Positions 6,391-63,189 of a DNA stretch of 64,000 nucleotides are shown here, piece by piece. The notes beneath the pieces were generated by a model that was given only the letters and a program-made list of their open reading frames with translations, made no database searches and was not told where the DNA came from. The DNA comes from Macrostomum lignano (lineage: Eukaryota), in NCBI GenBank assembly GCA_002269645.1, contig NIVC01000061.1:186001-250000 (forward strand), written 5' to 3'. A program made the translations under genes and the position numbers. Positions within the stretch are counted from its first letter, which is position 1. Every line of letters starts with the position of its first letter.

Positions 6391-6393
6391 ACT

Positions 6394-13371: not shown

Positions 13372-13392
13372 CATTTTGCTGACACTCATGAA

Positions 13393-26227: not shown

Positions 26228-28265
26228 TCAGCCTTGCCCGAATGAGCGCTGTTGCTGTTTGTTTAGCCTAGTGCAGGAGTCCAGGCTTGTGGCGCATGAG
26301 TTCAGAGTTTTTGAGCACAAGCTGAGATTTCTGACGCATAGGTTCAGGATCCATCGTTCAGGGGATTCCGGCTTCTTAGGTTCACATGGAGAGGGAGTAG
26401 TTGGAGCACGAGTGGAGGGCTCAGAAGAGTGCGTTGGAACTCTTGGCGAAGACGTTGAGGCTTCAGGTCGAGCAGTCGGTTCTTCAGGCTTAGCAGTCGG
26501 TTCTTCAGGCTTAGCAGTCGGTTCTTCAGGTTTCCTAGTCGGTTCTTCAGGCTTAGCAGTCGGTTCTTCAGGCTTAGCAGTCGGTTCTTCAGGCTTAGCA
26601 GTCGGTTCTTCAGGTTTCCTAGTCGGTTCTTCAGGCTTAGCAGTCGGTTCTTCAGGTTTCCTAGTCGGTTCTTCAGGTTTCCTAGTCGGTTCTTCAGGCT
26701 TAGCAGTCGGTTCTTCAGGTTTCCTAGTCGGTTCTTCAGGTTTCCTAGTCGGTTCTTCAGGTTTCCTAGTCGGTTCTTCAGGTTTCCTAGTCGGTTCTTC
26801 AGGTTTCCTAGTCGGTTCTTCAGGCTTAGCAGTCGGTTCTTCAGGCTTAGCAGTCGGTTCTTCAGGTTTAGCAGTCGGTTCTTCAGGCTTAGCAGTCGGT
26901 TCTTCAGGCTTAGCAGTCGGTTCTTCAGGCTTAGCAGTCGGTTCTTCAGGTTTCCTAGTCGGTTCTTCAGGCTTAGCAGTCGGTTCTTCAGGCTTAGCAG
27001 TCGGTTCTTCAGGTTTAGCAGTCGGTTCTTCAGGCTTAGCAGTCGGTTCTTCAGGCTTAGCAGTCGGTTCTTCAGGCTTAGCAGTCGGTTCTTCAGGCTT
27101 AGCAGTCGGTTCTTCAGGCTTAGCAGTCGGTTCTTCAGGCTTAGCAGTCGGTTCTTCAGGTTTCCTAGTCGGTTCTTCAGGCTTAGCAGTCGGTTCTTCA
27201 GGTTTCCTAGTCGGTTCTTCAGGTTTCCTAGTCGGTTCTTCAGGCTTAGCAGTCGGTTCTTCAGGCTTAGCAGTCGGTTCTTCAGGCTTAGCAGTCGGTT
27301 CTTCAGGTTTAGCAGTCGGTTCTTCAGGTTTAGCAGTCGGTTCTTCAGGCTTAGCAGTCGGTTCTTCAGGCTTAGCAGTCGGTTCTTCAGGCTTAGCAGT
27401 CGGTTCTTCAGGTTTCCTAGTCGGTTCTTCAGGCTTAGCAGTCGGTTCTTCAGGCTTAGCAGTCGGTTCTTCAGGCTTAGCAGTCGGTTCTTCAGGCTTA
27501 GCAGTCGGTTCTTCAGGCTTAGCAGTCGGTTCTTCAGGCTTAGCAGTCGGTTCTTCAGGCTTAGCAGTCGGTTCTTCAGGCTTAGCAGTCGGTTCTTCAG
27601 GTTTAGCAGTCGGTTCTTCAGGCTTAGCAGTCGGTTCTTCAGGCTTAGCAGTCGGTTCTTCAGGCTTAGCAGTCGGTTCTTCAGGTTTCCTAGTCGGTTC
27701 TTCAGGCTTAGCAGTCGGTTCTTCAGGCTTAGCAGTCGGTTCTTCAGGCTTAGCAGTCGGTTCTTCAGGTTTAGCAGTTGGTTCTTCAGGTTTAGCCGTC
27801 GGGGCCTCAGGTTCAGTAGTTGAGGCTTCAGGTTTAGCAGATGGGAATTCAGGTTTAGCCGTTGGGCCTTCAGGTTCAGCAGTCGCATCCATTGAGTCCT
27901 CCGGTTTCAAGGTCGAATCTGCAGAGAGAATTTTGTGCATTTATTTTATTCAAAAGCATCAGCAGAGCTGCATATAATACTGATTTATTAGTCCCAGCCA
28001 GTCCTTAATCCTTGCATGCAACTCATTGCCAAGCAGTTATTCTCGCTACTCACAGTGTGCCGGGATGCTGATGAGACACACGTGTCCGATCAGCAGCAGC
28101 TCAATCAGCAGCAGAAGGAACTTGTCTGAAAAGTACATTTGAGTTCGATTAGGAATATCAATGCAGGTTCGAATTACTTTCTTGACAACCATACTGTATT
28201 GATAAAGTATAACCGCAGCAATCTTAGTACGCGCTCGTAGTCTGCTTACGGGTTTCAGCCGCCAT
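26228..28265 (-). CDS. Secreted repeat protein A, ~592 aa: signal peptide, 63x KPEEPT(A/R), Leu/Cys-heptad tail; exons 28265-28250, 28125-28054, 27918-26228
   Basis: Canonical GT-AG junctions, all phase 1, summing to 1779 nt. N-terminus MAAETHKFLLLLIELLLIGHVCLIS. Paralogous to genes B and C. Confidence 0.8.
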
Positions 28266-28369
28266 GCAGGTCCTGACTTATTGAAATATTCTGTTGAAAT
28301 GAGTAACTTCGCAGTGCCGCGCAGTTTTCGAGCAAGGATTCCTGCTGGAATTTCTAGAAATTTGGCCTA

Positions 28370-28375
28370 TTTATA
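28370..28375 (-). promoter_or_regulatory. TATA box of gene A (TGTCTATAAA)
   Basis: Same motif 102-110 nt upstream of the ATG in genes A, B (55019-55024) and C (62280-62285). Confidence 0.65.
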
Positions 28376-29549
28376 GACAGATAAATTTTTTCCGCTAACG
28401 AGTACAAGCTAGAGTTTGTGGAGTGATTCAATTGTTATTTAAACAAAGAAATAAAAATAGACTGCCTGTCGTGCTATTCATTTATACATGAGTCAGAAAC
28501 AGCCCCAGAGCAGTCTGAGCTGTGAAAGCCACGGGAGCTGCTGACAAGAATGTGTAACGTTGCTGTAAACAGATTGCTCAGATCACCAAATTGTTTTTTC
28601 CGCCTATCTCTCTCTTGCGGTTTTCTCAAAGCAATGGGGGTTGTCTGGAAGTGAGAATTCATGGTAATGGCCATTGACACGAGCGGCCAGCTAACTTCAT
28701 TGGTCAATTTGTCCATCAGAATCCGAGTGCGAAAGGGTAATGGGGGTGTGGGGGCCACTTACAACCATAGACTATTTTATTTTACGCTCATAGACTCGTG
28801 CATTTTCTAAAATGATATCCCGGTAAATTGCTTTATTGTCAATTTCAAACAATGACCGGTCATTGCTTGAATGTCATTGCCTTAACGTAAATTACCATAG
28901 ACATTTTGAACAATGTCTCTGATGCTAGTTTCAAATTTACTTTGTGCAGCAGGCCGAGGGCCGACTGACAAGGTGTTTCACTGCACGCCCGGGCTGGCAT
29001 CGCATTAAATGGCTAAACAGAGCTGGTCATTCTGGAGCAGAATGTGACTGGACAACAGACATGCGGAGCTGTCTCAGCAGCAGTTTGTGCCATTTGCCTC
29101 TGCACTTTGGTGCGGATGTTGCTTTTTTATTTGATTTAGAATTTTTTACTTGTATGACAATATTCTCAATCTAGGTGAGACAGAGGGAATTACGAGTACA
29201 CTACTTACAAAGAAGGCACTTCGAATATTCACTAAAAGGCTCGTTTCACGGGAGCAAGAAGGTGTACGGCTCTCATAAGTGCTCATCAAGATAGACTTTC
29301 GACCGTCAGAATAATTTGAAACAAATAAACCAGACAGTTTAAGAGCTAGAGAGGCACTTCCATTGACTCGTACCTAAAGTACCTATGGGCCTAAAGTACA
29401 TCTGTCAGTTTACGAGCTATAATAAATGAGGCATCAGAGCTCCCAAATAAGCATATTACATGCAGCCAGCCAGCTATCTAAAAGAAAAGTTAAGTCTGTT
29501 GAGTTCATAAATCCATGCAGTCTCAGATCCACGGGGTGACTCTCCGTCA

Positions 29550-30646
29550 TCACTGGCGAATCAAGCATTCGAAGTTCTTCATCGAGTAGAACAGCGTCAG
29601 CTCCAGGCCAGCGTCGTGCAGATAATAGTACATTCCTCCGCCTGAAAATGCGGCTGGTGGCAGCAGGTACACTCCGTTGGGGTTGATAAAAGTGCACCAG
29701 CCGAACCACCAACCAGCTGACCTGTCATGGGCGCAGCTGCCCCCAGCCCAGTTGTCATTGTCAGCATCCGGCGTGCTGAACTGCCAGCTGTTCGGTGACC
29801 AGTCCGAATAAGTTCGCTGTCCGACACTCGACCTGCTCGCGTCCAACGGTCCCATCGAGCACCTGTACTTGTCGGTCGCTGGGCCAACAGAGAACGGAGC
29901 ATTCTCAGCCCAGTACCAGGTGCCGTTCCAGTCGCTGAACTCCCAGCGGACTCTCCATCCTCCAGTGGCGGTGAGCTGGTGCAGCTGCTCCAGCCCCATC
30001 CAGTAGTTGAGACTCTCGCCCTGACCGAATCCGTTGACGTACTCCGACCAGCCACGGTTGAAGCTGACGGAGCCGTCGACTCTGCGCTGGAACGTCGTCC
30101 AGAAAATCTCCGACGGCTCCTTGATCTGCAGTTCGAGAGACAAAGCAATGCAGTCAGTGACTGGTGCTCAGGGGCTCAAGACTCAGCTCACTCACCCACA
30201 GCATCAGCAGACTCAGCTCACTCACCCACAGCATCAGCAGACTCAGCTCACTCAGCGACAGCATCAGCAGACTCAGCTCACTCACCCACAGCATCAGCAG
30301 ACTCAGCTCACTCACCCACAGCATCAGCAGACTCAGCTCACTCACCCACAGCATCAGCAGACTCAGCTCACTCACCCACAGCACCGGCAGACTCAGCTCA
30401 CTCACCCACAGCACCGGCAGACTCAGCTCACTCACCCACAGCACCGGCAGACTCAGCTCACTCACCCACAGCACCGGCAGACTCAGCTCACTCAGTCTCG
30501 CCTTGAGCTCGGATCGATTTGAGCAGCCGGTACTCGGAGACGTCGCCTCGGAGCTGCTTCCAGCTCGTGACGGCCGCCGAGACGGCCGGCAGGGCGAGCA
30601 GGGCGGAGGCGATGGCGCAGAGATGAAGACTCAGAGTTGGACTCAT
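29550..30646 (-). CDS. Secreted fibrinogen-related domain (FReD) protein; exon 1 30646-30492, FReD exon from ~30131 to 29550; splice phase unresolved
   Basis: WTTFQRRVDGSVSFNRGWSEYVNGFG, YWMGLEQLHQLT, FSTPDADND, C..GWWF..C...NPNG motifs. Signal peptide MSPTLSLHLCAIASALLALPAVSA. Confidence 0.85.
30181..30494. repeat. 30-bp minisatellite filling the FReD intron, 10.5 copies
   Basis: Unit ACTCAGCTCACTCACCCACAGCA(T/C)C(A/G)GCAG. Confidence 0.95.
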
Positions 30647-30739
30647 TCTGTGGCTCACGTGCTTGTCTGAGAGCTCTGTGGGAATTCTAAATAGCACAGT
30701 TGGAGCGTGAGATCTCCTCTTTATTATAGACATTTGCTG

Positions 30740-31353
30740 CTATTCTTTCCTGTCATTCATGCGATGAAAACCATCTGGGGAGATCGGATATTCAGAGACT
30801 TTCCTGTTCAGGTTAGGCATCGCAGAGCGGGTCTTCCTGTAGTCGGTGGAACTGTTCCAGTGAAGCTCGTGTTGCTGGTGGAGCCACCTGTTGATATGGC
30901 GGGTGATTTTCGACAATTCGAGTCGCGAATGGTGATTTGAGATAATTCTAATTCTGTTAAGGACTGAGAGAAATTTTTCGGTGGTTAAAGCCTTGATAGC
31001 AGCTTGGCTATCAGTGTAAAAGTTAATATTAAAATTTCTTATGTTTTCCTGGAGCAGGTGCTGAGACACTGCTCAATGAGGCAACTTTCGGCTTGGAAAA
31101 CTGAGGCATTCTCACCGAGATGCAGACTTTCCTGAAAGAGCATCTCACCCTCATGAAAGATGGCGATAGCCGCTCCAGTGTGGCCGTTAAACAGCGAGCC
31201 GTCAGTGAAGTAGTCAATGCCCTGGCTGCGCCGGTTCACACCGACATCCAATGCTGGGATGGCCGTCTGGAAGCTCCTCCTGGAAGCCTCGCCCGGGGCG
31301 ATGTGGATGTTAAAAGGTCGCGACGGAAGGAGTCCGTATGTGGGATTACCCAA
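30740..31353 (-). pseudogene. Non-LTR retrotransposon RNase H and C-terminal fragment (I/R1/LOA-like)
   Basis: YFTDGS..G..G....SVFQAE and [12 protein letters not shown] motifs, split by a frameshift. Confidence 0.8.
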
Positions 31354-33780: not shown

Positions 33781-34296
<516 letters not shown>

Positions 34297-34324
34297 TAGA
34301 CGGGGACGGGGAACATTGGACTTG

Positions 34325-34530
34325 CGGAAGGGGCCGCAGCCTAGCGGTCTAAGGCGGCGCTCTGATCTGCCAGCGGCCGGGGCTCGATTCCAAAGTGCAG
34401 TCACATTAATTTAAAGCTAAATTAGAACCTCGGCTTGGCTCTACCTTTGCCATTAACCCCAAGGCACAGAGTAGTGCACATGCCTAAAGATAAAAGGTTA
34501 GAGCCGCTGTGTTCACTGATTCTCTGAACA
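34325..34530 (+). mobile_element. tRNA-derived SINE-like repeat
   Basis: A-box-like GCAGCCTAGCGGTCTAAGGCG and B-box-like GGCTCGATTCC; second copy at 4380-4650. Confidence 0.55.
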
Positions 34531-34697
34531 GTGCTGCTGGTCTTGAAAAATTTAGTGACAATTTTCAGTGTGCCATTTTCACTTCCGACTTGCTTATCAA
34601 ATAGCTACAAACTCGGTCCGATAATTTGATAGCGCGGTTGTAAGCCAAGCAGTGTATTTATCAATTAAACAATTTGAAAAGTTCAAAAACCAACACT

Positions 34698-34776
34698 TAA
34701 ACACGACTGCCCGTAAACACGACTGCCCGTAAACACGACTGCCCGTAAACACGACTGCCCGTAAACACGACTGCCC
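34698..34776. repeat. 16-bp tandem repeat (TAAACACGACTGCCCG) x5
   Basis: Direct observation, just 3' of the peptide gene stop. Confidence 0.9.
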
Positions 34777-34800
34777 ATTTGCACTGTCAGCATCTGGGAT

Positions 34801-35616
<816 letters not shown>

Positions 35617-36344
35617 TCTTTCAGTTGCCAAGGTGTAGTGGACTCAATATGAATTGCAGAAGCTGGACTAAACCTATGCAATTTTTTATTCAAAGTGAGT
35701 TCGTCGTGGGAGTTGACAGCGTTGATCGCTTTTTAACTGCTTTGCAGGCTTGCATGTACAGGCTGGGCCGAGAGTTTGTCTATGGCTCAACTCGAGAGAC
35801 GGTCCCATAACCTGTACTGGCGTCAACTTGTCTTGATTTTGTCTATGGTAATAAGTCGATATTCAAGAATGGGGCTCATGCTCGCTTGCGAACAACAACA
35901 GTGTTTGGTGCTTGGATGGTTGGACCATAGACTATGGAATGAGCAACATAGAGACGGACAGAATAATAGCGAGCTCTCGAAAGCAAGGACTCTGCGTGCT
36001 TTATTAGACTGAGTGAGGTAAACCAGGGTCAATATAGAAGAATACAAGCTGTTGAAACCCGCGGATTTTGAACCCGGGGAATTCCAATCCCCGGAACTAC
36101 TTTTGCATGTATTCTGAAATCTAAGGCCATACACAAACAAAAACTTGTTAATAGTTAGTAGGATAGAGGTAGACATAAAATGAAGCACATTCGTGTAAAA
36201 TTAGGATTTGAGGCAAACATTGATATTGTTGTCTGGGGTACTGCGCAGAATGTCAGGCAATGTCTGTCTGACTCTAAAACATGTATGGGCAAACTCTGGC
36301 CTCTCCCTGCCTCTCCCTACGTCCCTTGGATCCTTTAAAATTTC

Positions 36345-36941
36345 TATCGTCTCTTCTGTTTCCTCTCTTCTCTCTCGTCCCTCGTCTCTCCTCTCTCATC
36401 TCTCCCCTCTTCTCTCGTATCTTCCCTCATCTCTCTTCTCTTTCATCTCTCTTCTCTTTCATCTCTCTTATCTCATCTCATGTCTCTTCTTTTCTCTCTC
36501 CTCTCCTCTCTCCTCTCTACTTTTTCGTTTTCTCTCTCCTCTCCTCTCTCCTCCCTACTCTTTCGTTTTCTCTCTCCTCTCCTCTCTCCTCTCTTATCTT
36601 TTCTCGTATCTTCCCTCATCTCTCTTTTCTTTCATTTCTCTTATCTCATCTCTTCCCTCTTCTTTTCTCTCTCCTCTCCTCTCTCCTCTCCCCCTCTTCT
36701 CTCGTCTCTTCCTTCTCCTCTCTATTCTTTTCTCTCTTCTCTTAACTGTCTCCTCTACTCTCTCATCTCTCCTCTCTACTCGTTCCTCTCTCTCTCTCCT
36801 CTCATCTCTTCTTTCCTCTCTCCTCTCTCCCCTCTTCTCTCGTCTCTTCCCTCACCTCTTTTTTCTCTCTCGCCTTTGCTCTTTCATCTTTCCTTTCTTT
36901 TCTTTTATCTTTTCTCTCTTATCTCTTCTCATTTCTCTCTG

Positions 36942-37019
<78 letters not shown>

Positions 37020-37760
37020 GTCTTTCTCTCTTATCTCTCCTCCTCTCTCTACTCTCTCCCCTCTCCATTCTCCTCTTTCCTCTCCTCTCTCCTCACTCAC
37101 TTCTCTACATTTGTCTCTCTTCTCTCCTCTCGTCTCCGTAATCTCTTATCTCTTCTCTGTTCTCTCTACTCTCCCATCTTTCATCTGTTCACTCTCGTCT
37201 CTGCTCTCTCATCCCCCTCTTTAATCTGGCATCTCAGTCTTATATGTTCTCTCACCTCTCTCCTCTGTACTCTTTTCTTTCCCCTCTTTTGACTCCTCAC
37301 TTTCCTTTCTCCTTACTTTTTTCTCTTCTCTTCCCTTTTCTATACTCTCTCTCCCTCTCTTCTCTCTCTCGAGTCTCCTCTCTCCTTTATCTCTCATCTC
37401 TCATTTCTCATCTCTCCTTCCACCTCTCTCATCTCTACAACCTTGGAGATGTAGAGATGTATCTTTATCTCTTCTCTCTTCCCCAGTGGTGGGAGTGAGG
37501 AGTGCCCATTTTTTCGCGCCGCAAGCTTTTTTGTGTCAATCTTTTGTGTCAACTCTCTGCTCTCCTCTCTGCTGTCTCCTCTCATCTGCAGCTCTCTACT
37601 CTCATCTCTACTCTCTCCTCTCGCTTTTCCTCTCTCCCCTCTTCTCCCCCTCTCTCTCATCGTCCTCACCCCCTCATCTCTCCTATTATCTTTTATATTT
37701 TCTTTTATCCCCTCTTTCGCTTCTCCTCTCTTCGAATCGTCTATTCCTTCTTTCCACTTT
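36345..37760. repeat. Polypyrimidine CT-rich low-complexity tract with a pure (CT)n core near 36945-37013
   Basis: Direct observation. Confidence 0.9.
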
Positions 37761-38419
37761 CATCTGCCCCTCAGCCATAAGCTGGATTCTTTATCTGGCC
37801 ACTGACATGGTTGTTCTCATGCTTTGATCACGTCATCTTTCTTGCCAATTCGCAGCCCTGAAAGGAATTTGTGTATCTTCAGCTCTACTGCAGTTTGCAT
37901 CAGTCTAACAACCAAGGAAATACGCATTTCTTAGGAGGCCATTTAAATTTTAAAGTACTTTTAAGAGAAACTTAAAATTTCCATGGTGTGCCTAATTTAT
38001 TAGGGTTGTATTTCATTGCATCGCATCGCCTTTTCATAAATCTTTCGCTTTTACAAACCATGCTGGATTCCCTCGATTTGCCAATTGCCATCCACTGTTA
38101 AACTGCTGCAGAGTTTGCCAATACAGAGAGGAGGGCAATGGTTAGAATTTCTCACTAAACTGTTATGGCTAAACGTAGCCTCTCTCCACTCTCAGGGTGC
38201 AGAGAAGGCTATAAATAAAGTTATTCCAAAACACTGTACATTTGCTATGTACATTCAGTCCTATCGCCTGACCCTTCGTCTGGCTCTGGGGGGAATGAGT
38301 GGAGTGAGTGAGTGGCACAAACAACAGAAAAAGCAGACAAACTTCACATGCTTACAGTTTCTTTTTTGGTTGAGTTACAGAGTTGAAACTTTACATTTAG
38401 ATAGAGAATGAGTCAATGA

Positions 38420-38940
38420 AGAATTGTGTCAAGTTTGAAGTCAATCGCTTTATTTGGAGCAAACTTATGGCAGCTGAAAGTTAGTCAATTTTGAAACCCT
38501 TTTACACATCTATGCCCAGATCGGGATCGAGAAAGAGAGGCAGGCGGGCGGAGGTTGGGGTGGTTGCTACGCTGAAAAAAGCAGCCTAACTTTAAAAGTG
38601 CACAGCGCCGTTCAGGATCAACTTTGAAACTCGAAATTTTACATGATTGTTCCAAAATAGTTGAAGATTATCTGTGTCAAATTTGAAGAGAATCGATAAA
38701 AGTGGAACGGCGCTATGGAGGATTTAGTGAAAAAATCGCGCATTTTGAGCAGTTTTTTGTACTTTTAGGTAGGAAGACTCAAATTTAGGAAATTAAAATG
38801 TAGCCTAAGACATTCTCCGTAGTGAGTTTAGGGTGGGTGTAAAATTTGGTGTCATTTGGTTGAGCGGTTTGGGAGTCCATAGCGATCAAAATTGTCCACA
38901 CACAGACAGACAGAGTTTTGATTTTTATAGGTATAGATAT
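38420..38940 (+). mobile_element. Helitron/Helentron-associated (HINE-like) non-autonomous repeat
   Basis: GTGTCAA(G/A)TTTGAAG..AATCG repeats, TTGAGCGGTTT, short CAGACAGACAG seed and ATAGAT end; similar motif at 57065-57140. Family assignment is from pattern recall only. Confidence 0.4.
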
Positions 38941-39165
38941 ATATATTATTTTGTGGATCCTACTTAGTTTTTTATTCATTCAAATTGGTGCGTGGCTGAC
39001 AGCTAACGGTCTGACGTGGCAGCGAGTTTACACAGACAAAGCATACAAAGCCATAGACAACAGAAACCAATCTGGTTCAAGTGCGATTAATCTGGGCCAT
39101 ATAGCTGGAATGCATGGCTAAAGTACAGAATGGCACAGAGGACCACACGCTAAAGTCGGTCTGGT

Positions 39166-39208
<43 letters not shown>

Positions 39209-39655
39209 AGTGAATGCATTGGTGAGCGCTAGTTTGGAGTTTGATGTTGGTGAAACAACCTGCAGATTGTCTGGTGATTTCACTTCTTAGTTTATGGTGC
39301 AGATGAACTCCGCTGGGCTCTTTGCAACGCACCAACGTATATTAATCATCTACCAGCATGCCAGCAGACCCAGTTAAAAAATCAGTTTGAAAAAAGTGAC
39401 GACCTCTTTGCTCTAAGTGTCAAATTAAAGGTTTTTTTCAGTTCTGATCTGTCTTTAAGTTTCTGAGCGATATTTCCATATTCTGTGACAAAACTTCAGA
39501 TGTCTGGTCTGATTATCAAAAGATGTTAGAAAAATGCATTAAATTTAATAGCTGAAAAAGCACACGAAATATTTCGGTTAGGAGTTTAACAGTTAGTTTA
39601 TTCATACGTTACAGTATACATAAATTGATTAATATCAGTTTCAATTATTTATACA

Positions 39656-39975
39656 GGGTGTTGTAGCCTCCTGGTTAGAGCGTCGGACTTACGACTTGAA
39701 GGTCGGGGGTTCGATTCCCGATCCTACACGAACAATTTGCGTCCTTGATTGAGCAAGACATTTAACTCTCTAAACTGCTTCAGTTCACCCAGCTGTAAAT
39801 GCAAAATTGGTGCCAGCATTAGCTGGGGTAATTGAGGGTGTGTACCCCCCCCCCCAGTCCTTGGACTGAACAGCCATACGCAGCCTTCAGATGCGCCGGC
39901 AATAGCTGCGGCTGAGCTGTCGGTTGCACGTCTGTCAATTAGGGCAGGTGTAATCAGTTATTATTTATTATTATT
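39656..39975 (+). mobile_element. tRNA-derived SINE with Deu/Nin-like central domain
   Basis: A box GTAGCCTCCTGGTTAGAGC, B box GGGTTCGATTCCC, core GAGCAAGACATTTAAC..TCACCCAGCTGTAAATG and (TTA)-rich tail. Confidence 0.75.
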
Positions 39976-40612
39976 GGTAGGAATAATGTTGAGTGAGCCC
40001 TGCACTATTTGAGTGGCTGACGGTCAGACAGACAGGCAGTAGGTGTCGGCTCAAGATTACCCAAGATTTGAGCAGAAATAGTGCACAGAGCCGAAAGGCA
40101 TATTATGCATGTACATGTGAGTGCACTCCACGGAGAGTGATGCGTTTAATAGGGCCTTTGGCTGTACAGTCTTCGAGATGGCCGATAGGAAATCCTTCAA
40201 ATTGGAATTCAAAACCCAAGGCTGATCTCTCTGAGACTGATTGGCGACCATTCGACAATGTCGAAGGTGAAATGGCATCAAATGGAGTTAAGAGACCGTA
40301 AAGATTCGATCGGCCTTACGCTAGGTCACCTTTTCAGCAAGCAATTAGTGCGGCCTCTCCAAATGGACATTAATTATTAATAAGCGTTCCAATATACTGT
40401 TACGTTAATATCGCTAAATTTCCAAAGTGTTTCTTGACTTCTTTGACAAGCCAAACCAAATGAATATGGACCTGACTGAAATTCCATGATCAGAACTTGT
40501 TTTATTGTCATGCTGCTACCCAAGTAAACTTATAGTAGTATTTCATGCGCTTTCACATTTCTTCTATAGATTTTAATTGTCTGGATCCCAACTTGTGCCA
40601 GTCAGCCCAGCC

Positions 40613-45670: not shown

Positions 45671-47039
45671 TCCGTCTAGACCTCCTCCGCGTGCTGCCGG
45701 CTATTTAAGGAAGCGGTTTTCGGCATGAGAATCCTCAAACTCCTCCGTCCTTGTCTTACTTTGGACTTGCTGTCAGACGCTGCTCTGACCTATTCGTCCA
45801 TAGGACGAACCTCTGCCGGTCCGCGGTCTGTTACCGCCAAGTTCCTTTCAGCTCCCCAAGTGAGCTCATCTGCCGGCCAGCGGTCTGATACCGCCAAGTT
45901 CCTTTCAGCTCCCCAAGTGAGCTCATCTGCCGGCCAGCGGTCTGTTACCGCCCAGCATCTTCAGCATCGCCTGAACTACATCAGCGCCTCGTCGCTCCAG
46001 CGCATCGCCGCTTCACTGTCTGCCTGTCTGCAGCCAACAGCCGTCGTCGGTCACTCCATCGCTCTCTCTCTGTGCAGCTGCCGGTAAGTTCCTGTTACTA
46101 ATTTGTGCTCTTATTGCCTTGCTTGTCCGGGTTCGCCTATTTTTCCATTGCTTGATTAGAGAGCGGAGCCAATTGTGATACCATACCTTTTGCTGTATGA
46201 TATTCAATAGTGAAGCCGCTTAATTTGCCTGATTATCTTGCCTAATGGCCAAATCGTTAACTATTACTAAACTCATCATTATTCACCTGTTCACCATCAT
46301 TTCATTCATGGCTTGCTAAGCCTTTCTCCCAGGGTGGCAAGGCATAAGGAAGTTCGGGTAAGCTAATGGCCTCCCCCCGTGCAAAGCCCGCCTGTGTGTG
46401 CGTGCTGCGGGGCCGTGTGTGCATGCAGTAGAGGGATTAGCGAGTCTTGGCACAGAATGGCAGTAGGAAGGTTGCAACCCCATGCTGACGCGTCCCTTCG
46501 CCCTGAGCAATCTAAACTATAGACAGTACATGTTCGCCTCACCCTACTCTTAGTAATTGAAACCGCAAGTCAGCCTCGATCACAGCCACAAAGGATCCCC
46601 TGCTGAGAAATCCTCCAGATTGAGCCCAGAGTTCCCGATCATGCCCCAAGCAGAGTCCCTGTACTCGGCTGCATGTGTCTCCCCTGTTAGCCTAAATCTC
46701 CTGGTAACCATCCCAGGCGGGGCTCTAGCCTCGAGAGGTCTGGTAGTAAGATCTAGGTGCGCCAGGTCACATAGAGTGGTGGCAGCCACTCGGTCATGCT
46801 ATGGCCGAGTGACCAACTATTGCACCTTGGCTACAGGCGGGGTCCATGTGGGTCCTTGGCCCTCTGGTCACGAAAGCGCTACCAAAGCTATCTATCATGT
46901 GGGCGGGACAGTCTGGTGCTGGAGGTCCGTCGAGTTTTCATTGGCATAAACACAGAAGGTGTGTTATTTATCGTTTTATCTCTGACAAGTCAAGAGGCGG
47001 ATTTCATAGCCTCCGCCCTAGTAAACAAACGAAGCAGAG

Positions 47040-47470
47040 ATAAATGAAGTGTTCAGCCCCACGAAAGGGGTTGATGGGTACGCACCTGTGATGGCGCGGC
47101 AGATGCTGCCTTGCAGCTGGTAGAGGCGCTCCCGAGCGGTCTTCTCCTCCACGCTAGACCAGATGAAGCTCGCGTACATGATGCTAGGCCGGATGATGTC
47201 GGTGTAAATCCAACGGACTGTTTTCGAGGAGAGGCCCCAGGTCGGCCCGATGACTCTGCACACTTAGGCGAAGCAGCGCTTCGCTCGACCAATGTTGTCG
47301 TCAAGGTGCTCGATCGTTCGGCGTAGATTATGCGCTAGAGTCACACCGAGATACGTGACCTCCTTCTCAAAGGGGATGTTTCTACCATAAACAGTGAGGT
47401 TTTGCATCTCCCACCCTCGGCGCTTGGTGAAGATGACAATGGATAAATAATCAGCGGTCCCAGTGCGTGA
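47040..47470 (-). pseudogene. Non-LTR retrotransposon RT C-terminal fragment (I/R1/LOA-like)
   Basis: [17 protein letters not shown]....[44 protein letters not shown] with an internal stop. Confidence 0.8.
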
Positions 47471-47866
47471 CAACGATTGTCTGGCGAGCGCCGGTGGGTA
47501 GGCGCGAGCCATAGACAAATCGTTGTCACGTGCTGCGACCGCTGATTCTTTGCATTGTTTTTCTGTTTGACGATCCTACAGACAATGCATTGTTTGTAGT
47601 AATGGATTGTTCTGCATTAAAAATGTGAATAATGATCGTCAAATTGCTAAACAATGATTGTCTTCGCGAAGCTGAATTTTAGACCATGCTACCTACCATG
47701 CTACCTGGCCCAGTAAGCCACCTTGTCAGCGGTCAGGAGCTCGACCATGACGAGATTCCACAGAAGTGGGGTACGCACGCCGCCTTGGGCGTGACTCACT
47801 CTTGTACCTCCACAACTAGCTCTACATGTAGACCATGCATGCCATTTCGTGATTTACGAAGAAAGC

Positions 47867-48273
<407 letters not shown>

Positions 48274-49194
48274 TATTGTTCTTGAGCGTCGTGAGGAGCC
48301 ATCAGAGCCCATCTTGAGCGTCATAGGTTCCGAGACTGTTAGCCGTAAAACAAATTTGTCTATTCCAGTGTTATAATTCAAGCTTTTAGCTACTACGCTA
48401 AAAGCAATTTTATTACTTGATTTTTCTGAGACACAACCGCGTTGACCTAAAGTGACCTGTATGCATAAAACTGTCTAATATTACGAGTAATAATGTGAAT
48501 TTTTCCACAGTTTCAGGACAGCCATTGAGTTGAAGCGTGTAGAATTTTTCTAGTACGAGCTAACGCAGAAAAAGTACACCTACGATTAAGGCATGTACGA
48601 GAGTAATAAAATTCACCACGCAACAATTTCGAAATTATCAACGTCCATCAAGCATTTATCTATATGTAACGCCATCAGCTATGTAATCTTGTCCAACGCT
48701 TTCACATACTCGTAGATACTCGTAGATAGTGGGCGGTGCGTCAGTAAAGTCTTTGCCAAAACTTCAAAAATTTTGCTATAATTATTACGGGAGATCGCGA
48801 TAACAGTCCGAACTCTCCACTTGAGCTTGCTCTAAGAGGAGTTTCGAAATAAATCCTAAGAGATACGGATTACGAAGCCTCAAGTTTAAAAGTGGATGTA
48901 ATAAATAGACAATGGGCTCGTAGCTTTCATCTCGGATGCTATATTTTTGAACTCCATAGCCTAGGATAAACACAAGCAGAGAATGGCAGAGTTTTAATAC
49001 TCATAGGTCACAACGATTTTCACACGCAGTTATTTCGTAAACGAATCAAGTCGCCTGATAGACAGGTTATTGATAAAATGCTAATTGTCAACGAAATAAG
49101 CAATCAATGACTTTGTTCGCCTAGGATATTCTACCAGTTTTCAGTGATGCGGATGAGAGTAAGTCAGATAAGATCAGCGTTGCCAGAACGGGCG

Positions 49195-54917
<5,723 letters not shown>

Positions 54918-55018
54918 GTAGTTCGCACGCGTTGTCCTGAACAACGATTTCTATCTATCCGATACTCTGTCTTTTGTTTTTCCGCCTGAGCTTGAGCTGA
55001 AATTCCTTTACCGACATA

Positions 55019-55024
55019 TTTATA
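55019..55024 (-). promoter_or_regulatory. TATA box of gene B
   Basis: TGTCTATAAA on the minus strand, position conserved with genes A and C. Confidence 0.65.
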
Positions 55025-55513
55025 GACAAATGCTTTGGGTTGAGCAAAGCGTTTGACCAAAATAGGAGCCGAGGACAATGGGCCAAGCAATTTCTTCGCC
55101 AGTGGCAGAGGTGATGTAAATATTTTTACGCCAACGGCAAATAAAACCTATCGGCACATCCAAGTTACTTGAGTCCAGACAGACCAATTGCATTCTGTTT
55201 TTTTCAGGGAATATTTTTTTTTGCTTTTGCTCGCACAGGCGCGCCACTACACGGCCTTGCGAAAGGAATGCAGATGTTTTTGTAAACTGGTTGGCCGGTT
55301 TCCATCTTGTTTTTCTCGGTTCAAGCTCTCTATGGGAGGCTCTCTCTCTCTCTCTCTTTAGACGACACTCTCATGACCCTTGAACTCCCTAAGACGCATT
55401 AAATTAATGGCTTTGCGAAACGAGCTTCACTGCTTGACATAATTTTTTAAAGCACTTTTGCAATGATCCCAGAGCAGCTTCACAACTCTGTTTACTCTAT
55501 TACTCTCTGTTTA

Positions 55514-55825
55514 CTCTGCTTTGGCAATAATCAATTTCTCTGCTTTGGCAATAATCAATTTCTCTGCTTTGGCAATAATCAATTTCTCTGCTTTAGCAAT
55601 AATCAATTTCTCTGTTTTGGCAATAATCAATTTCTCTGTTTTGGCAATAATCAATTTCTCTGCTTTGGCAATAATCAATTTCTCTGTTTTGGCAATAATC
55701 AATTTCTCTGTTTTGGCAATAATCAATTTCTCTGCTTTGGCAATAATCAATTTCTCTGTTTTGGCAATAATCAATTTCTCTGTTTTGGCAATAATCAATT
55801 TCTCTGCTTTGGCAATAATCAATTT
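55514..55825. repeat. 24-bp minisatellite (CTCTG(C/T)TTTGGCAATAATCAATTT) x13
   Basis: Direct observation. Confidence 0.95.
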
Positions 55826-56020
55826 TTCTGCCCACCTGTTAAAGGTGCCGACGGTGTCGGGTTGATGATTGAATGCTTGAGAGACTAGCTTAGGATGTCC
55901 AACAGTCGAGGCTTGATCGGCGAAACTCGAGAAATTCGCATCAGGGTGTTCATAGTCACCTGGTGCCACCTGTTGACGGTCCAGAAGCTCCGTCTCGGTG
56001 TAGGCCAGTGATCAACGAAG

Positions 56021-56922
56021 TCAGAGCCTGATGCAGACACATGTCAGAGCTGATGCAGACACATGTCAGAGCTGATGCAGACACATGCCAGAGCTGATGC
56101 AGACACATGTCAGAGCTGATGCAGACACATGCCAGAGCTGATGCAGACACATGTCAGAGCTGATGCAGACACATGTCAGAGCTGATGCAGACACATGTCA
56201 GAGCTGATGCAGACACATGTCAGAGCTGATGCAGACACATGTCAGAGCTGATGCAGACACATGTCAGAGCTGATGCAGACACATGTCAGAGCTGATGCAG
56301 ACACATGTCAGAGCTGATGCAGACACATGTCAGAGCTGATGCAGACACATGTCAGAGCTGATGCAGACACATGTCAGAGCTGATGCAGACACATGTCAGA
56401 GCTGATGCAGACACATGTCAGAGCTGATGCAGACACATGTCAGAGCTGATGCAGACACATGTCAGAGCTGATGCAGACACATGTCAGAGCTGATGCAGAC
56501 ACATGTCAGAGCTGATGCAGACACATGTCAGAGCTGATGCAGACACATGTCAGAGCTGATGCAGACACATGTCAGAGCTGATGCAGACACATGTCAGAGC
56601 TGATGCAGACACATGTCAGAGCTGATGCAGACACATGTCAGAGCTGATGCAGACACATGTCAGAGCTGATGCAGACACATGTCAGAGCTGATGCAGACAC
56701 ATGCCAGAGCTGATGCAGACACATGTCAGAGCTGATGCAGACACATGTCAGAGCTGATGCAGACACATGTCAGAGCTGATGCAGACACATGTCAGAGCTG
56801 ATGCAGACACATGTCAGAGCTGATGCAGACACATGTCAGAGCTGATGCAGACACATGTCAGAGCTGATGCAGACACATATCAGAGCTGATGCAGACACAT
56901 GCCAGAGCTGATGCAGACACAT
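56021..56922. repeat. 22-bp minisatellite (CAGAGCTGATGCAGACACATGT), about 41 copies
   Basis: Direct observation. Confidence 0.95.
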
Positions 56923-57172
56923 CTCTAGCATTCTGACAATGCATTTCAAGTCGAAAACTTTTGCTTGACCTTTGCAAAAAGCACGTTTTTCAAATATTTA
57001 ATCCACTTAGCAGAGAGAAAATTCTTAGCCACGACACATGTACCGTCAACAAAAAAATTCTGATCGAATGGTGCAAGTTTGAAGAAAATCGGTTGAGCCG
57101 TTTTTGCTAAATCAATCGCACACAGACAGACAGAAGATAGACAACTCATTTCAAAGGCTTACATGGGCAATC

Positions 57173-58480
57173 GCTGAGCTGTCAAAACTTGGAGAGTTGC
57201 TGAGATGTCAAGACTTGGGGAATTGCTGAGATGTCAAGACTTGGGGAGTTGCTGAGATGTCAAGACTTGGAGAATTGCTGAGATGTCAAGATTGAAGAAT
57301 TGCTGAGATGTCAAGATTGAAGAATTGCTGAGATGTCAAGACTTGGGGAGTTGCTGAGATGTCAAGACTTGGGGAGTTGCTGAGATGTCAAGATTGAAGA
57401 ATTGCTGAGATGTCAAGATTGAAGAATTGCTGAGATGTCAAGATTGAAGAATTGCTGAGATGTCAAGACTTGGGGAGTTGCTGAGATGTCAAGACTTGGG
57501 GAGTTGCTGAGATGTCAAGACTTGGGGAGTTGCTGAGATGTCAAGACTTGGAGAATTGCTGAGATGTCAAGATTGAAGAATTGCTGAGATGTCAAGATTG
57601 AAGAATTGCTGAGATGTCAAGACTTGGGGAGTTGCTGAGATGTCAAGACTTGGGGAGTTGCTGAGATGTCAAGATTGAAGAATTGCTGAGATGTCAAGAT
57701 TGAAGAATTGCTGAGATGTCAAGACTTGGGGAATTGCTGAGATGTCAAGACTTGGGGAATTGCTGAGATGTCAAGACTTGGGGAATTGCTGAGATGTCAA
57801 GACTTGGAGAATTGCTGAGATGTCAAGACTTGGGGAGTTGCTGAGATGTCAAGACTTGGGGAATTGCTGAGATGTCAAGACTTGGGGAATTGCTGAGATG
57901 TCAAGACTTGGGGAATTGCTGAGATGTCAAGACTTGGGGAATTGCTGAGATGTCAAGACTTGGGGAGTTGCTGAGATGTCAAGACTTGGAGAATTGCTGA
58001 GATGTCAAGACTTGGGGAATTGCTGAGATGTCAAGACTTGGAGAATTGCTGAGATGTCAAGACTTGGAGAATTGCTGAGATGTCAAGACTTGGGGAATTG
58101 CTGAGATGTCAAGACTTGGGGAGTTGCTGAGATGTCAAGACTTGGGGAATTGCTGAGATGTCAAGACTTGGGGAATTGCTGAGATGTCAAGACTTGGAGA
58201 ATTGCTGAGATGTCAAGACTTGGAGAATTGCTGAGATGTCAAGACTTGGAGAATTGCTGAGATGTCAAGACTTGGAGAATTGCTGAGATGTCAAGATTGA
58301 AGAATTGCTGAGATGTCAAGACTTGGGGAGTTGCTGAGATGTCAAGACTTGGGGAGTTGCTGAGATGTCAAGACTTGGGGAGTTGCTGAGATGTCAAGAC
58401 TTGGGGAGTTGCTGAGATGTCAAGACTTGGGGAGTTGCTGAGATGTCAAGACTTGGGGAATTGCTGAGATGTCAAGACTT
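57173..58480. repeat. 25/26-bp minisatellite GCTGAGATGTCAAGA(CTTGGGGAGTT/TTGAAGAATT), about 50 copies
   Basis: Direct observation; two length variants occur in blocks. Confidence 0.95.
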
Positions 58481-59345: not shown

Positions 59346-59617
59346 CCTGCACTCTCAAATGTAGCGACCACAGACGGAATCTTCGGTGATGGCGACTTTT
59401 CGATGTTGCTAAGTATATATGCGAGCTCGAGCCGATATGGGTCAGTAGGTCCAGAGTATCACAAATCAAGTCCGCAGAACAAAAGATATTGTCAAATTAA
59501 ATGTGTAATTTGTGATTTAGTGATGCGGAATACAGTAGGTCAGATAATATCAGGCGGCGCTTTAGGTCGATTCCGTCTAAACTCCAGCTTGAGCAGTCGA
59601 AACTTGAACTGTCGAAG

Positions 59618-62177
59618 TTAAGCTCGATCAGTCAAGGCATCAGGTCGATCAGGCGCAGCTTTGGGTCGATCAGGCGAAGCTTTAGGTCGATTCAGTCGAA
59701 ACTCGAGCAGTCGAAGCTCCAGATTGAGTAGTCGAATTTCGTGCAGTCGAAGCTCGAGAAGTCGAAGCTCCTGTCTGAGCAGTCGAAGCTTGAGCAGTCG
59801 AAGCTGGAGCTGTCGAAACTTTAGCTTGAGCAGTCGAAGCTCGAGCTGTCGAAGCTCACGCTCGATTCGTCGAAGCTCCAGCTTGAGCTGTCGAAGTTGA
59901 TCAGCCGAGACATCAGGCCGATTAGTCGAAGGTTCAGGTCGAGCAGTCGAAGGTTCAGGTCGAGCAGTCGAAGGTTCCGGTCGAGCAGTCGAAGGTTCAG
60001 GTCGAGCAGTCGAAGGTTCAGGTCGAGCAGTCAAAGGTTCAGGTCGAGCGGTCGAGGCTTCAGGTCGAGCAGTCGAAGCTTCAGGTCGAGCAGTCGAAGC
60101 TTCAGGTCGCTTCAGTCGAAGCTTCAGCTCGAGCTGTTGAAGCTCCAGCTCGAGATGTCGAAGCTTCAGCTTGAGCAGTCGAAGCTCAAGCAGTCGAAGC
60201 TTCAACTTGAGCAGTCGAAGCTCAAGCAGTCGAAGCTTCAACTTGAGCAGTCGAAGCTCAAGCAGTCGAAGCTCCAGCTCGAGCTGTCGAATTTCAGGTC
60301 GATCAGTTGAGGCATCAGGTCGATCAGGCGAAGCTTCAGGTGGATTCAGTCGAAGCTTCAGCTTAAGCAATCGAAGCTCCAGCTCAAGCTGTCGAAGCTT
60401 CAGCTTGAGCAGTCGAAGCTTGAGCAGTCGAAGCTTCAGCTTGAGCAGTCGAATCTTAAGCAGTCGAAGTTCGAGCTCGAGCTGTCGAAGCTTCATCTTG
60501 AGCAGTCGAAGCTGGAGCAGTCGAAGCTTCAGCTTGAGCAGTCGAATCTCGAGCAGTCGAAGCTTCAGCTTGAGCAATCGAAGCTCGAGAAGTCGAAGCT
60601 TCAACTCGAGTTGTCGAAGTTCAGGTTGATCAGTCGAGGCATCAGGTCGAGCAGTCGATGTTTCAGGTCGCGCAGTTGAAGCTTCAGGTGGAGCAGTCGA
60701 TGTTTCAGGTCGCGCCGTTGATGTTTCAGGTCGAGCAGTCGATGTTTCAGGTCGAGCAGTCGAGGCTATAGGTTGAGCAGTCGATGTTTCAGGTTGGGCA
60801 GTCGAGGCTTCAGGTCGAGAAGTCGATGTTTCAGGTCGAGCAGTCGATGTTTCAGGTCTTGCAGTCGATGTTTCAGGTCGTGCAGTCGATGTTTCAGGTC
60901 GGGCAGTCGAAGCTACAGGTCGAGCAGTTGAAGCTTCAGGTCGAGCAGTCGAGGCTTCAGGTCGGGCAGTCGAGGCTTCAGGTCGAGCAGGCCAGGCTTC
61001 AGTTAGAGCAGTCGAGGCTTCAGCTTGAGCAGTCGATGTTTCAGGTCGAGCAGTCGATGTTTCAGGTCGAGCAGTCGAGGCTTCAGGTCGAGCAGTCGAG
61101 GCTTCAGGTCGGGGAGTCGATGTTTCAGGTCGGGCAGTCGATGTTTCAGGTCGTGCAGTCGATGTTTCAGGTCGGGCAGTCGATGTTTCAGGTCGTGCAG
61201 TCGATGTTTCAGGTCGGGCAGTCGAAGCTACAGGTCGAGCAGTTGAAGCTTCAGGTCGAGCAGTCGAGGCTTCAGGTCGGGCAGTCGAGGCTTCAGGTCG
61301 AGCAGGCCAGGCTTCAGTTTGAGCAGTCGATGTTTCAGGTTGGGCAGTCGAGGCTTCAGGTCGAGAAGTCGATGTTTCAGGTCGAGCAGTCGATGTTTCA
61401 GGTCGTGCAGTTGATGTTTCAGGTCGGACAGTCGAAGCTACAGGTCGAGCAGTTGAAGCTTCAGGTCGGGCAGTCGAGGCTTCAGGTCGAGCAGGCCAGG
61501 CTTCAGTTCGAGCAGTCGAGGCTTCAGCTTGAGCAGTCGATGTTTCAGGTTGGGCAGTCGAGGCTTCAGGTCGAGCAGTCGAGGCTTCAGGTCGAGCAGT
61601 CGATGTTTTGGGTCGAGCAGTCGATGTTTCAGGTCGAGCAGTCGAGGCTTCAGGTCGAGCAGTCGAGACTTCAGGTCGGGGAGTCGATGTTTCAGGTCGG
61701 GCAGTCGATGTTTCAGGTCGTGCAGTCGATGTTTCAGGTCGGGCAGTCGATGTTTCAGGTCGGGCAGTCGAGGCTTCAGGTCGAGCAGTCGAGGCTTCAG
61801 GTCGAGCAGTCGAGGCTACAGGTGGAGCAGGCCAGGTTTCAGGTCGAGCAGGCGAGGCTTCAGGTCCTAAAGTCGAGATTTCAAGTGGATCAGTGCAGCT
61901 AAAATCTTAAATTTTTTTCTCGTTAACTTAGAGCATGCGGATCTGTGCAAAGCTGTCATTACTCACGTTCTGTCGGGACGCAGTGACACAGGCGACCAAC
62001 AAGCAGCAGCTCAATTAAAAGCAAAAGAAACTTATCTGAAAAAAACAAAGTTAGAAACCGAATTTAACCCTTCAAATCTACAAAGTCTGGCTTAAAAATG
62101 AACTGTTAGAGCAGATCTCATCACCAGGGATTAACTAACTAATCTCAGTTTGCTCACTCACCAGTTTGGCCCGCCAT
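59618..62177 (-). CDS. Secreted repeat protein C, ~790 aa: signal peptide and ARPE(A/T)ST stalk alternating with three Leu/Arg/Lys-rich blocks; C-terminus probably truncated
   Basis: Exons 62177-62162, 62035-61967, 61905-59618 sum to 2373 nt. N-terminus MAGQTDKFLLLLIELLLVGRLCHC. The last acceptor (tttaag|AT) is weak but in phase. 61930-62590 aligns with 54690-55330 of gene B. Confidence 0.65.
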
Positions 62178-62279
62178 GTAGTTCGCAAGCTTTGTCCTGA
62201 CCAAATATTTCTATCTACTTTGTCTATCGTTTTTCCGATTGAGCATGCTGAAATTCCTTTACTGCCGACCTACGAGTTA

Positions 62280-62285
62280 TTTATA
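62280..62285 (-). promoter_or_regulatory. TATA box of gene C
   Basis: TGTCTATAAA on the minus strand, position conserved with genes A and B. Confidence 0.65.
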
Positions 62286-63189
62286 GACAAATGCTTCCTA
62301 TTGAGCAATGCGTTTGACCAAAACAGAGGCAGAGCACATTTGACCAAACAATTCCTCCGCAGCTGGCAGAAGTGATGTAAATATTTTTACGCCACGGCAA
62401 CCTATTGACATCCAAGTTAATTGAGCACAGACAGCCGGATCGCATTTTGTTTTCCAAGGAATATTTTTCCGCTCACGCTTGTTGAGGCGCACCACCGCGT
62501 GGCCTTGCGAAGGAAATGCAGATATTTTTGTAAACGGCTTGACAAGTTTTCATCTTGTTTTTCTCGGTTCAAGCTCTCTATGGGGGCGCTTCACATGACA
62601 GAGAGAATCGTCACCTGACTGAGACATCCTTATGAGTTAGTTTTACTTGCAAACAACACTCTCGGGCATTAACATTAAGTTTACACCTTTTGCTGCGCAA
62701 TTTCAACCAAACTTGCATTCTATTTCGGCACGCAGCGCTCAATTTAAACATGAAGGTATGAGGGCAGAGGCAGAAGCGGCTTAATGAGTTTTGCAAGATG
62801 GACAAAAAGGTGTGAACGGAAAAAGGTGTACTAAGAGTTCGTTCGAATGTCACGATTTCAATATCAGCTCAAGGACTACTCAATAACCCGAGATTAGTGA
62901 AAAATTTTCATACATGTACATGTAGAAGGATCTATGAACTTTCGATTCAATAAAAATAAAATAAGAGAAAAAATGTCTACTATCGTTACTTCGTACCCTT
63001 TTGTCTCTGGTTTTCGGCAGTAAAGCCTTCCGGCAACGATTCAATTGTTTGCCGGTTGTTTCAGATTGTTGATTGTTGAATTGAAGCATACAACGACGAA
63101 CAGCAACAAAAAAACAACGGAGTAATTTTGTTCCACTGTCAGAAATAAGTCCGTAAGGACAAAGCGAATAACTTGAAGCAGTCTTGTTT

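Follow-up and report, generated by a model that had tools for sequence, protein, structure and literature searches.

We suggest that three genes of the flatworm Macrostomum lignano, named here A, B and C, probably encode Macrostomum-specific, secreted, fast-evolving, mucin-like proteins of modular design. They lie on the same strand of a 64,000-nt stretch of DNA (positions 186,001 to 250,000 of contig NIVC01000061.1, assembly GCA_002269645.1), referred to below as the window. Their models were assembled by script from the minus-strand reading, and all coordinates of A, B and C refer to that strand (Table 1). As built, gene A has three exons and a protein of 592 amino acids, gene B eight exons and 1293 amino acids, and gene C three exons and 777 amino acids.

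All three genes begin in the same way. A TATA box (GTCTATAAATA) stands 110-113 nt ahead of the ATG, which opens a first exon of 16 nt (MAAET in A, MASET in B, MAGQT in C); the second exon, of 69-72 nt, encodes a hydrophobic, signal-like segment; and every intron of A, B and C is of the GT-AG type and in phase 1. The small exons and the phase-1 introns had been picked out by an earlier, sequence-only reading of this DNA, and the gene models bear it out on each of these points. Across the window, the peptide KF[LF]LLLIELLL, the exon-1 pattern ATGGCGnnnSAAACYSGTRAG and the TATA motif occur exactly three times each, in constant order and with constant spacing, and a degenerate 29-nt signal-exon pattern gives three matches against 0.00 expected (100 shuffles). 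Hydropathy peaks at 2.6-2.9 in the three N-termini, and the C-termini are hydrophilic. Judged by sequence, this gene anatomy, repeated in three paralogues, is far beyond chance and unlike that of non-coding satellites.

By the similarity of their sequences, A, B and C are same-strand paralogues, with A as an older branch than the B/C pair. B and C are ~75% identical over a 5' module of ~700 nt that runs from the promoter through exon 1, intron 1 and exon 2 into the beginning of intron 2, and they also have in common their arrays and the start of the 3' untranslated region (3'UTR). Common to A and this pair are the TATA box, the two small exons and the opening part of intron 2; the exon 2, array and tail of A are shared at 64-73%, and the first 3'UTR bases are common to all three genes. 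The local paralogous expansion proposed earlier is therefore well founded. Gene C stops at 59618-59620 (...LTDRA*), and homology to the 3'UTR of B restarts 65 nt downstream. As C keeps a B-like 3'UTR start, the tail-coding segment present in the other two genes was lost from it.

The terminal exon of each gene is dominated by a 21-nt tandem repeat. Tandem Repeats Finder places 67 copies at 26471-27885, 77 at 49475-51087 and 92 at 59913-61866, in agreement with the large final repeat exons of the sequence-only reading. The unit of A (AAGCCTGAAGAACCGACTGCT, KPEEPTA) and that of B and C (CGACCTGAAGCTTCGACTGCT, RPEASTA) agree in 15 of their 21 positions. The array of A is very homogeneous, with five DNA variants and two peptides among 63 units, and is indeed the pure KPEEPT(A/R) stalk it had been taken for. 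B and C are more diverse, B having 38 distinct variants among 60 units and C carrying re-amplified units of 36 nt, a spread that confirms the turnover of repeats suspected earlier. Periods of the coding arrays are all multiples of three (21, 15, 36, 93 and 234). Pro makes up 24.5%, Glu 23.6% and Thr 13.2% of A, Ser and Thr together account for 16.4% of A and ~21.5% of B and C, and the stalks carry a net charge of -44 in A and -31 in B. Stalk Thr and Ser are located three or four residues ahead of Pro, and in A Thr also follows Pro directly; given the preferences of GalNAc-transferases, these positions would be favourable for mucin-type O-glycosylation.

In B and C, one and the same repeat is read in two frames. 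With the register tracked along the open reading frames (ORFs), every Leu-rich stretch turns out to be the RPEASTA 21-nt unit in the +1 frame, where GAC CTG AAG CTT CGA CTG CTC is read as DLKLRLL; the third frame holds TGA. Frame switching had been proposed from the letters, and Leu blocks had been noted in C, of which there are three; the one in B, of ~105 codons, had been missed. B enters its block through a 1-nt deletion, by which a G is lost (GAAGCTTCG to GAACTTCG), and leaves it through a 1-nt insertion (ACTGCT to ACAGAAT), after which its tail is back in frame 0, the frame that A uses straight through repeats and tail. The entry junction (GAA-CTTCGAC) is the same in B and the first two blocks of C, and the exit junction (ACTGAAWCSACC) is the same in B and all blocks of C. 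These common junctions indicate that the Leu block predates the B/C duplication and was kept in both genes. In C, to judge from the repeat sequences, it was multiplied by segmental amplification, in part through a derived unit of 36 nt (15+21).

The consensus unit is free of stops in two of its frames, which gives an internal control within the same DNA. Across the arrays of B and C, whose repeat copies are non-independent, the frame that is read contains 0 stops, compared to 18 in the other consensus-open frame, and the bias points the same way in each block, every Leu block and the whole of C included. This argues for selection on the ORF. The frames are kept open, with the sequence of the Leu peptide itself perhaps only loosely constrained. 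It is uncommon for paralogous ORFs to alternate stably between two frames in this way. The Leu blocks have an isoelectric point of 11-12, and a Pfam scan of them gave no credible domain. AlphaFold2 (AF2) predicts the block of B as a helix of ~100 residues, with a predicted local distance difference test score (pLDDT) of 82-97, and block plus tail as a long helix, a disordered linker and a tail helix. Removal of the Leu blocks as introns was considered and rejected: there is no GTRAG donor 5' of the entry junction of B, and there is one in the whole last exon of C.

Five CUB exons stand between the signal exon and the stalk of B. Their lengths are all multiples of three, so that each is symmetric (1-1), and the subtypes follow one another in the order a-b-a-a-b. 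One domain per symmetric phase-1/1 exon is the classic exon-shuffling module, and, as all introns are in phase 1, any CUB exon could be gained or skipped in frame; the modular exon design ascribed to the family is evident here. The whole B protein matches the Pfam CUB model (PF00431) at 115.7 bits (E=1.6e-33), above the gathering cut-off of 21.4 bits. Of the earlier claim of five symmetric CUB exons, the symmetry stands throughout, and CUB1, CUB3 and CUB4 pass the cut-off individually; CUB2 and CUB5 are sub-threshold, yet they span model positions 8-110 and 9-110, and their matches in M. lignano CUB proteins, at 30-35%, are CUBs of type b.

As far as sequence comparison goes, the CUB domains are the only part of the family with relatives in the collections searched. 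A profile of the five CUB exons, run against 1.84 billion representatives, retrieved generic multi-CUB proteins, and neither the signal motif nor the Pro/Thr/Ser (PTS) heptads nor the Cys-heptad pattern was found in any of its 150 best matches. A homology search with the CUB region of B returned a single distant match, an ovochymase-like protein of Branchiostoma (28%). The best per-domain matches are three uncharacterised CUB proteins of M. lignano (42% to CUB1, 35% to CUB5), namely A0A1I8G727, PAA50045.1 and A0A1I8G0Q1, in which type-a and type-b CUBs alternate as in B. The locus of PAA50045.1 contains at least 10 CUB exons and, unlike B, has no family signal exon, 21-nt array or tail, which fits a transfer of phase-1/1 CUB exons between genes. 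Such M. lignano CUB proteins are likely to be the source pool for exon shuffling into B. Intron 2 of C matches only the 5' part of intron 2 of B and then runs directly into the array. On these sequences, a gain of the cassette by B and its loss from A and C would both fit.

The public model of A0A1I8G0Q1 (UniRef) is itself peculiar, in that its N-terminal part is one 15-nt repeat in all three frames (GASTR / APAPG / RQHQG), which runs into a CUB domain at its middle; b-a-b CUBs come next. The model may have been wrongly joined from a further locus that combines a repeat with CUBs, and would then hint at a larger family or design.

A and B end in a helical tail, their C-terminal ~80 residues being 46% identical. 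The best-conserved stretch reads C-x2-NLS-x-C-S-x2-LNS-C-A-x-SL-x-S-C; all four heptad-spaced Cys (C-x6-C-x6-C-x6-C) are invariant between the two proteins, each with a Leu three residues before it, as is the NLS N-glycosylation sequon. The Cys tail named in the earlier reading is confirmed for A and B, and is missing from C, where homology to this end of the gene is limited to the 38 nt of 3'UTR. Pfam recognises no domain in the tail of A or B, and no relative of it was found among PDB sequences. AF2 models the tail as a single long helix (pLDDT 94-98), in which Leu and Cys at the heptad a/d positions would suit a disulfide-stapled coiled coil.

The description of the family as unrecognised holds within the databases searched. 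The exact A, B and C proteins are absent from 15 billion sequences, a profile of signal plus tail has no homologue among 5.8 billion protein clusters, the peptide strings of the three proteins occur in no paper of the literature searched, and metagenome contigs do not contain the DNA pattern of the signal exon. The window gave no matches in Rfam and tRNA scans.

From this anatomy we infer secretion, glycosylation and oligomerisation, and with them a tissue and a biological role, along the following lines. A cleavable signal peptide, encoded partly by the 16-nt ATG exon and partly by that of 69-72 nt, would direct the proteins into the secretory pathway. The 60-100 acidic Pro/Glu/Thr(Ser) heptapeptides of the terminal exon would form an extended, O-glycosylated, polyanionic stalk, N-terminal to which, in B, the five CUB domains would serve as a ligand-binding head. 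In B and C, the +1-frame stretches would yield basic Leu-rich heptads (DLKLRLL) folding into long amphipathic helices. The C-terminal helix of A and B, with Leu and Cys at a/d, probably zips chains into disulfide-stapled coiled-coil oligomers, and these could make up the multivalent, brush-like polymers of a surface coat or of what a gland secretes. The four or five modules of the family would be a signal peptide, an acidic stalk, a Cys-heptad helix and, as options, a CUB head and a basic helical block, diversified by exon gain and loss, repeat turnover and compensated frameshifts. A gland, mucus, adhesive or reproductive role is a plausible guess. A further proposition is that the 21-nt repeat is purposely read in two frames, both of them selected open, to give an acidic O-glycosylated stalk in the one and a basic Leu-heptad coiled coil in the other; we advance this tentatively, as something possible rather than probable.

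Several observations weigh against the reading of A, B and C as working, secreted mucin-like proteins. A conserved Glu lies within the hydrophobic core of exon 2, which is atypical for a signal peptide. Constraint is loose, with a ratio of non-synonymous to synonymous change of ~0.66 (pN/pS) between B and C in exons 1-2 and one of ~0.76 (dN/dS), almost neutral overall, between the tails of A and B. The AF2 models were built from one or two sequences. The absence of the exact proteins and of signal and tail homologues from protein collections bears on the claim that the genes are expressed. Further to that, C has no Cys tail and the acceptor of its last exon is weak, with a poor pyrimidine tract, and the Leu block of B shows 25 non-synonymous versus 4 synonymous substitutions and a hidden RPEAST frame that is still almost intact, so that this block could have been tolerated as a frameshift and not selected as a module. 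The last group of facts would agree with an account in which only A and B work, C is truncated and decaying, and the Leu blocks are frameshift debris that stays open only because the consensus unit, as built, has no stop in its +1 frame. We find this account rather doubtful. It does not readily accommodate the 0 versus 18 stops, seen in every Leu block and all of C, nor the junctions common to B and C, by which the block outlasted both the duplication and a ~20-25% divergence of the flanking DNA. In addition, the Leu blocks of C were re-amplified as 36-nt in-frame units with the other two frames closed, and B regains frame 0 exactly ahead of the conserved tail.

The hydrophobic N-terminus could instead be an uncleaved signal anchor, which would turn the proteins into type II membrane-tethered surface mucins of a glycocalyx. 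In A, the hydrophobic stretch that follows a Lys is ~19-20 residues long (FLLLLIELLLIGHVCLISI), enough to cross a membrane; in B and C, however, the uninterrupted core is only ~12 residues and is succeeded by Arg and small residues (LCHC-A/V) resembling a cleavage region, and the Glu in the core speaks against an anchor too. We consider membrane tethering unlikely. Less credible still is the idea that the 21-nt arrays are a non-coding satellite, with exons and ORFs that arose by chance or through errors of long-read assembly in which indels generated the frame switches, even though non-coding tandem arrays abound in the window, antisense ORFs of comparable length run over the 21-nt arrays, and the resources searched contain no annotation or protein record for the three genes. 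A satellite would not be expected to come with a TATA box, an ATG mini-exon, a signal exon, GT-AG phase-1 introns and the same 3'UTR start in all three copies, or with real CUB exons between the signal exon and the array of B. The coding arrays have periods in multiples of three, unlike many neighbouring arrays (4, 11, 16, 22, 26 and 46), and the stop bias counts against a satellite as well. As for assembly errors, the frameshift junctions lie in diverged sequence outside homopolymers and are repeated in two paralogues.

What is new in A, B and C is the family, a set of unannotated, lineage-restricted genes; the mucin-like kind to which it belongs is already known, and the two-frame use of one repeat is an unusual detail of an otherwise ordinary kind of family. 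Mucin-like PTS glycoproteins are a class defined by function and not by descent (PMC9417175, Pajic et al. 2022). A, B and C have the long Pro/Thr/Ser tandem repeats typical of this class, and they resemble its members in the signal-like N-terminus, in the single large Pro/Thr/Ser repeat exon with variable units and copy number, and in their lineage-specific origin and rapid turnover. They differ from the usual mucins in a strongly acidic, Glu-rich stalk and in the proposed oligomerisation through a Cys-heptad helix, with no cystine knot. VWD, C8, TIL, CTCK, SEA and transmembrane segments were found by Pfam in none of the three proteins (the only Pfam domain is CUB, in B), which sets them apart from gel-forming and membrane mucins.

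The SmPoMucs of Schistosoma mansoni appear to be the nearest flatworm analogue. By description they are likewise a clustered, species-restricted flatworm family with a signal peptide, short tandem repeats in variable number, a conserved C-terminal part and some truncated members. Their 9-amino-acid repeat is its own 27-bp exon in a ~1-kb genomic repeat, and the gene has 15 exons (PMC2576457, Roger et al. 2008). In A, B and C, by contrast, the repeats all follow one another within a single exon, in genes of 3 or 8 exons, an organisation other than that of the SmPoMucs, which are also without CUB domains, Cys-heptad tail and frame switching. Mlig-ap1 and Mlig-ap2, two adhesive proteins of M. lignano, have 5,407 and 14,794 amino acids and repeats that are GRK-rich or 221-255 amino acids long, Mlig-ap1 with an EGF/C-lectin core and GRK-rich repeats and Mlig-ap2 with vWD/TIL/C8/LDL/TSP-1 domains (PMC8621496). 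They are large repetitive gland proteins of Macrostomum, as A, B and C would be, and Mlig-ap2 is glycosylated. Identity of A, B and C with either was rejected, as Pfam scans found none of the domains of Mlig-ap1 and Mlig-ap2 and the repeats differ.

Recoding of a repeat by a change of frame has precedents. In the frameshift protein of the MUC1 variable number tandem repeat, a 1-nt indel turns the PTS repeat into a long, basic and different peptide, the alternative frame being stop-free, and Ohno reportedly put forward a hypothesis of the 'alternative frame of a repetitious coding sequence'. In B and C, unlike in either case, the switch is compensated, is common to two paralogues and alternates within one ORF, and selection apparently keeps it open, in contrast to a disease allele or a one-off origin. 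The EP and GPEET procyclins of trypanosomes, glycosylphosphatidylinositol (GPI)-anchored coat proteins of protozoa, have an acidic Pro-Glu(-Thr) repeat rod. It resembles the KPEEPT(A/R) stalk of A by analogy only; A has a hydrophilic C-terminal helix and no GPI or transmembrane signal.

Table 1. Features of genes A, B and C, in window coordinates
Feature	Position	Strand	Description
Gene A TATA box	28368..28378	(-)	GTCTATAAATA; 113 nt 5' of ATG; aligned across the three 5' regions
Gene A exon 1	28250..28265	(-)	16 nt; ATG, MAAET; donor GTAAG; ends in phase 1
Gene A exon 2	28054..28125	(-)	72 nt; hydrophobic, signal-like, HKFLLLLIELLLIGHVCLISIPAH
Gene A terminal exon	26228..27918	(-)	63 KPEEPT(A/R) units, PTS linker, Cys-heptad tail
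Gene A array	26471-27885	(-)	Part of terminal exon
Gene A linker + tail	26231-26476	(-)	Part of terminal exon
Gene A stop	26228-26230	(-)	Part of terminal exon
Gene B TATA box	55017..55027	(-)	110 nt 5' of ATG
Gene B exon 1	54902..54917	(-)	16 nt; MASET
Gene B exon 2	54739..54807	(-)	69 nt; signal-like, GKFFLLLIELLLFGRLCHCASTE
Gene B CUB1 exon (type a)	54140..54541	(-)	402 nt; phase 1-1; Pfam CUB E=1.4e-12, 48.3 bits
Gene B CUB2 exon (type b)	53679..54050	(-)	372 nt; phase 1-1; sub-threshold, E=0.06, 14.1 bits
Gene B CUB3 exon (type a)	52689..53045	(-)	357 nt; phase 1-1; Pfam CUB E=1.4e-5, 25.8 bits
Gene B CUB4 exon (type a)	51791..52159	(-)	369 nt; phase 1-1; Pfam CUB E=9.7e-10, 39.2 bits
Gene B CUB5 exon (type b)	51300..51680	(-)	381 nt; phase 1-1; sub-threshold, E=0.09, 13.5 bits
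Gene B terminal exon	49195..51110	(-)	~60 RPE(A/T/V)ST(A/D) units, Leu block, linker, Cys-heptad tail, polyQ, stop
Gene B Leu block	49471..49795	(-)	~105 codons; LRLLDLK x14; +1 frame
Gene B tail helix	49198..49350	(-)	Cys every 7 residues, CMKNLSVCSESLNSCASSLASC; conserved NLS sequon
Gene C TATA box	62278..62288	(-)	111 nt 5' of ATG
Gene C exon 1	62162..62177	(-)	16 nt; MAGQT
Gene C exon 2	61967..62035	(-)	69 nt; signal-like, DKFLLLLIELLLVGRLCHCVPTE
Gene C terminal exon	59618..61866	(-)	749-codon open frame; RPEAST stalks alternate with three Leu blocks; no Cys tail
Gene C Leu blocks	60347-60616, 60113-60289, 59693-59899	(-)	+1 frame of the 21-nt unit
Gene C 3'UTR remnant	59516..59553	(-)	38 nt; 84% to the B 3'UTR start at 49140-49177

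The span first proposed for the family, 26228-62290, does contain A, B and C, and it also takes in unrelated sequence, namely an ORF with a fibrinogen domain, a TCF25-like gene and fragments of transposons. The fibrinogen C-terminal domain ORF (29550-30143, minus strand, Pfam E=2.6e-32) lies between A and B and is probably a separate fibrinogen-related gene; upstream of it are a 30-nt array of 10.5 copies (30179-30494), with GTGAGT in its unit, and, at ~30491-30739, a signal-like stretch. The TCF25-like gene (40613-42517, minus strand) is a single exon of ~64% GC amid ~45% GC. Its product is 98% identical to M. lignano BOX15_Mlig008420g4, of the TCF25 family, and the exact ORF is absent from the 15 billion sequences. 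M. lignano is a neopolyploid with paralogous subgenomes. The locus of BOX15_Mlig008420g4, on another contig of the same assembly (NIVC01000292.1, GCA_002269645.1), is collinear with the window only at 33781-45702 (89-98% identity) and then diverges; against it, the window has an extra CT-rich low-complexity block of ~2.9 kb at 36044-38937. A, B and C are not part of that locus, which thus provides no independent copy of the genes.

Outside the family, the window holds a Ty3/Gypsy-type long terminal repeat (LTR) retrotransposon at 5309-14890, with gag, protease, reverse transcriptase, RNase H and integrase ORFs at 6451-12151. Its LTRs are 98-100% identical, which points to a recent insertion, and an internal 46-nt repeat is present in three copies in one LTR and six in the other. 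A second retroelement, BEL/Pao-like by eye only, occupies 15922-19666, with its ORFs broken into several frames; an LTR-like piece at 21178-21336 is 96% identical to 5309-5467, and reverse-transcriptase or RNase H fragments are found at 31039-31353 and 47018-47518. The window is rich in tandem repeats. They include very long microsatellites: two perfect ones, (ACT)170 at 52169-52678 within intron 5 of gene B and (AGAC)101 at 47869-48273, and a pair in opposite orientation, (GTCT)128 and (AGAC)133, at 33781-34296 and 35049-35565, flanking ~750 nt. Highly regular arrays occur among and next to the genes, at 55514-55831 (24 nt), 56020-56922 (22 nt), 57164-58480 (26 nt), 42661-43781 (11 nt) and 44356-44956 (24 nt). 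These are apparently non-coding, though the 24-nt periods are a multiple of three, and the collinear locus likewise has the arrays of 11 nt and 24 nt that lie upstream of the TCF25-like gene.

The family, as we read it, would add a secreted, lineage-restricted set of proteins to a model flatworm for bioadhesion, regeneration and sexual conflict, fields in which the gland products are mostly orphan repeat proteins. It offers a natural example of three routes of diversification, namely gain or loss of phase-1/1 exons, concerted repeat turnover and compensated frameshift recoding. The releasing factor of the flatworm duo-gland system is still unidentified (PMC8621496). If the Leu frame is translated, a mucin repeat can yield a coiled-coil module without new DNA. 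Should both frames prove to be read on purpose, unequal crossing-over could generate secreted proteins resembling block copolymers, with a variable number of blocks (B has one Leu block, C three). A secreted material would then be tuned by simple genetic means, and such a material could be a component of mucus, of seminal fluid or of the duo-gland adhesive/release system.

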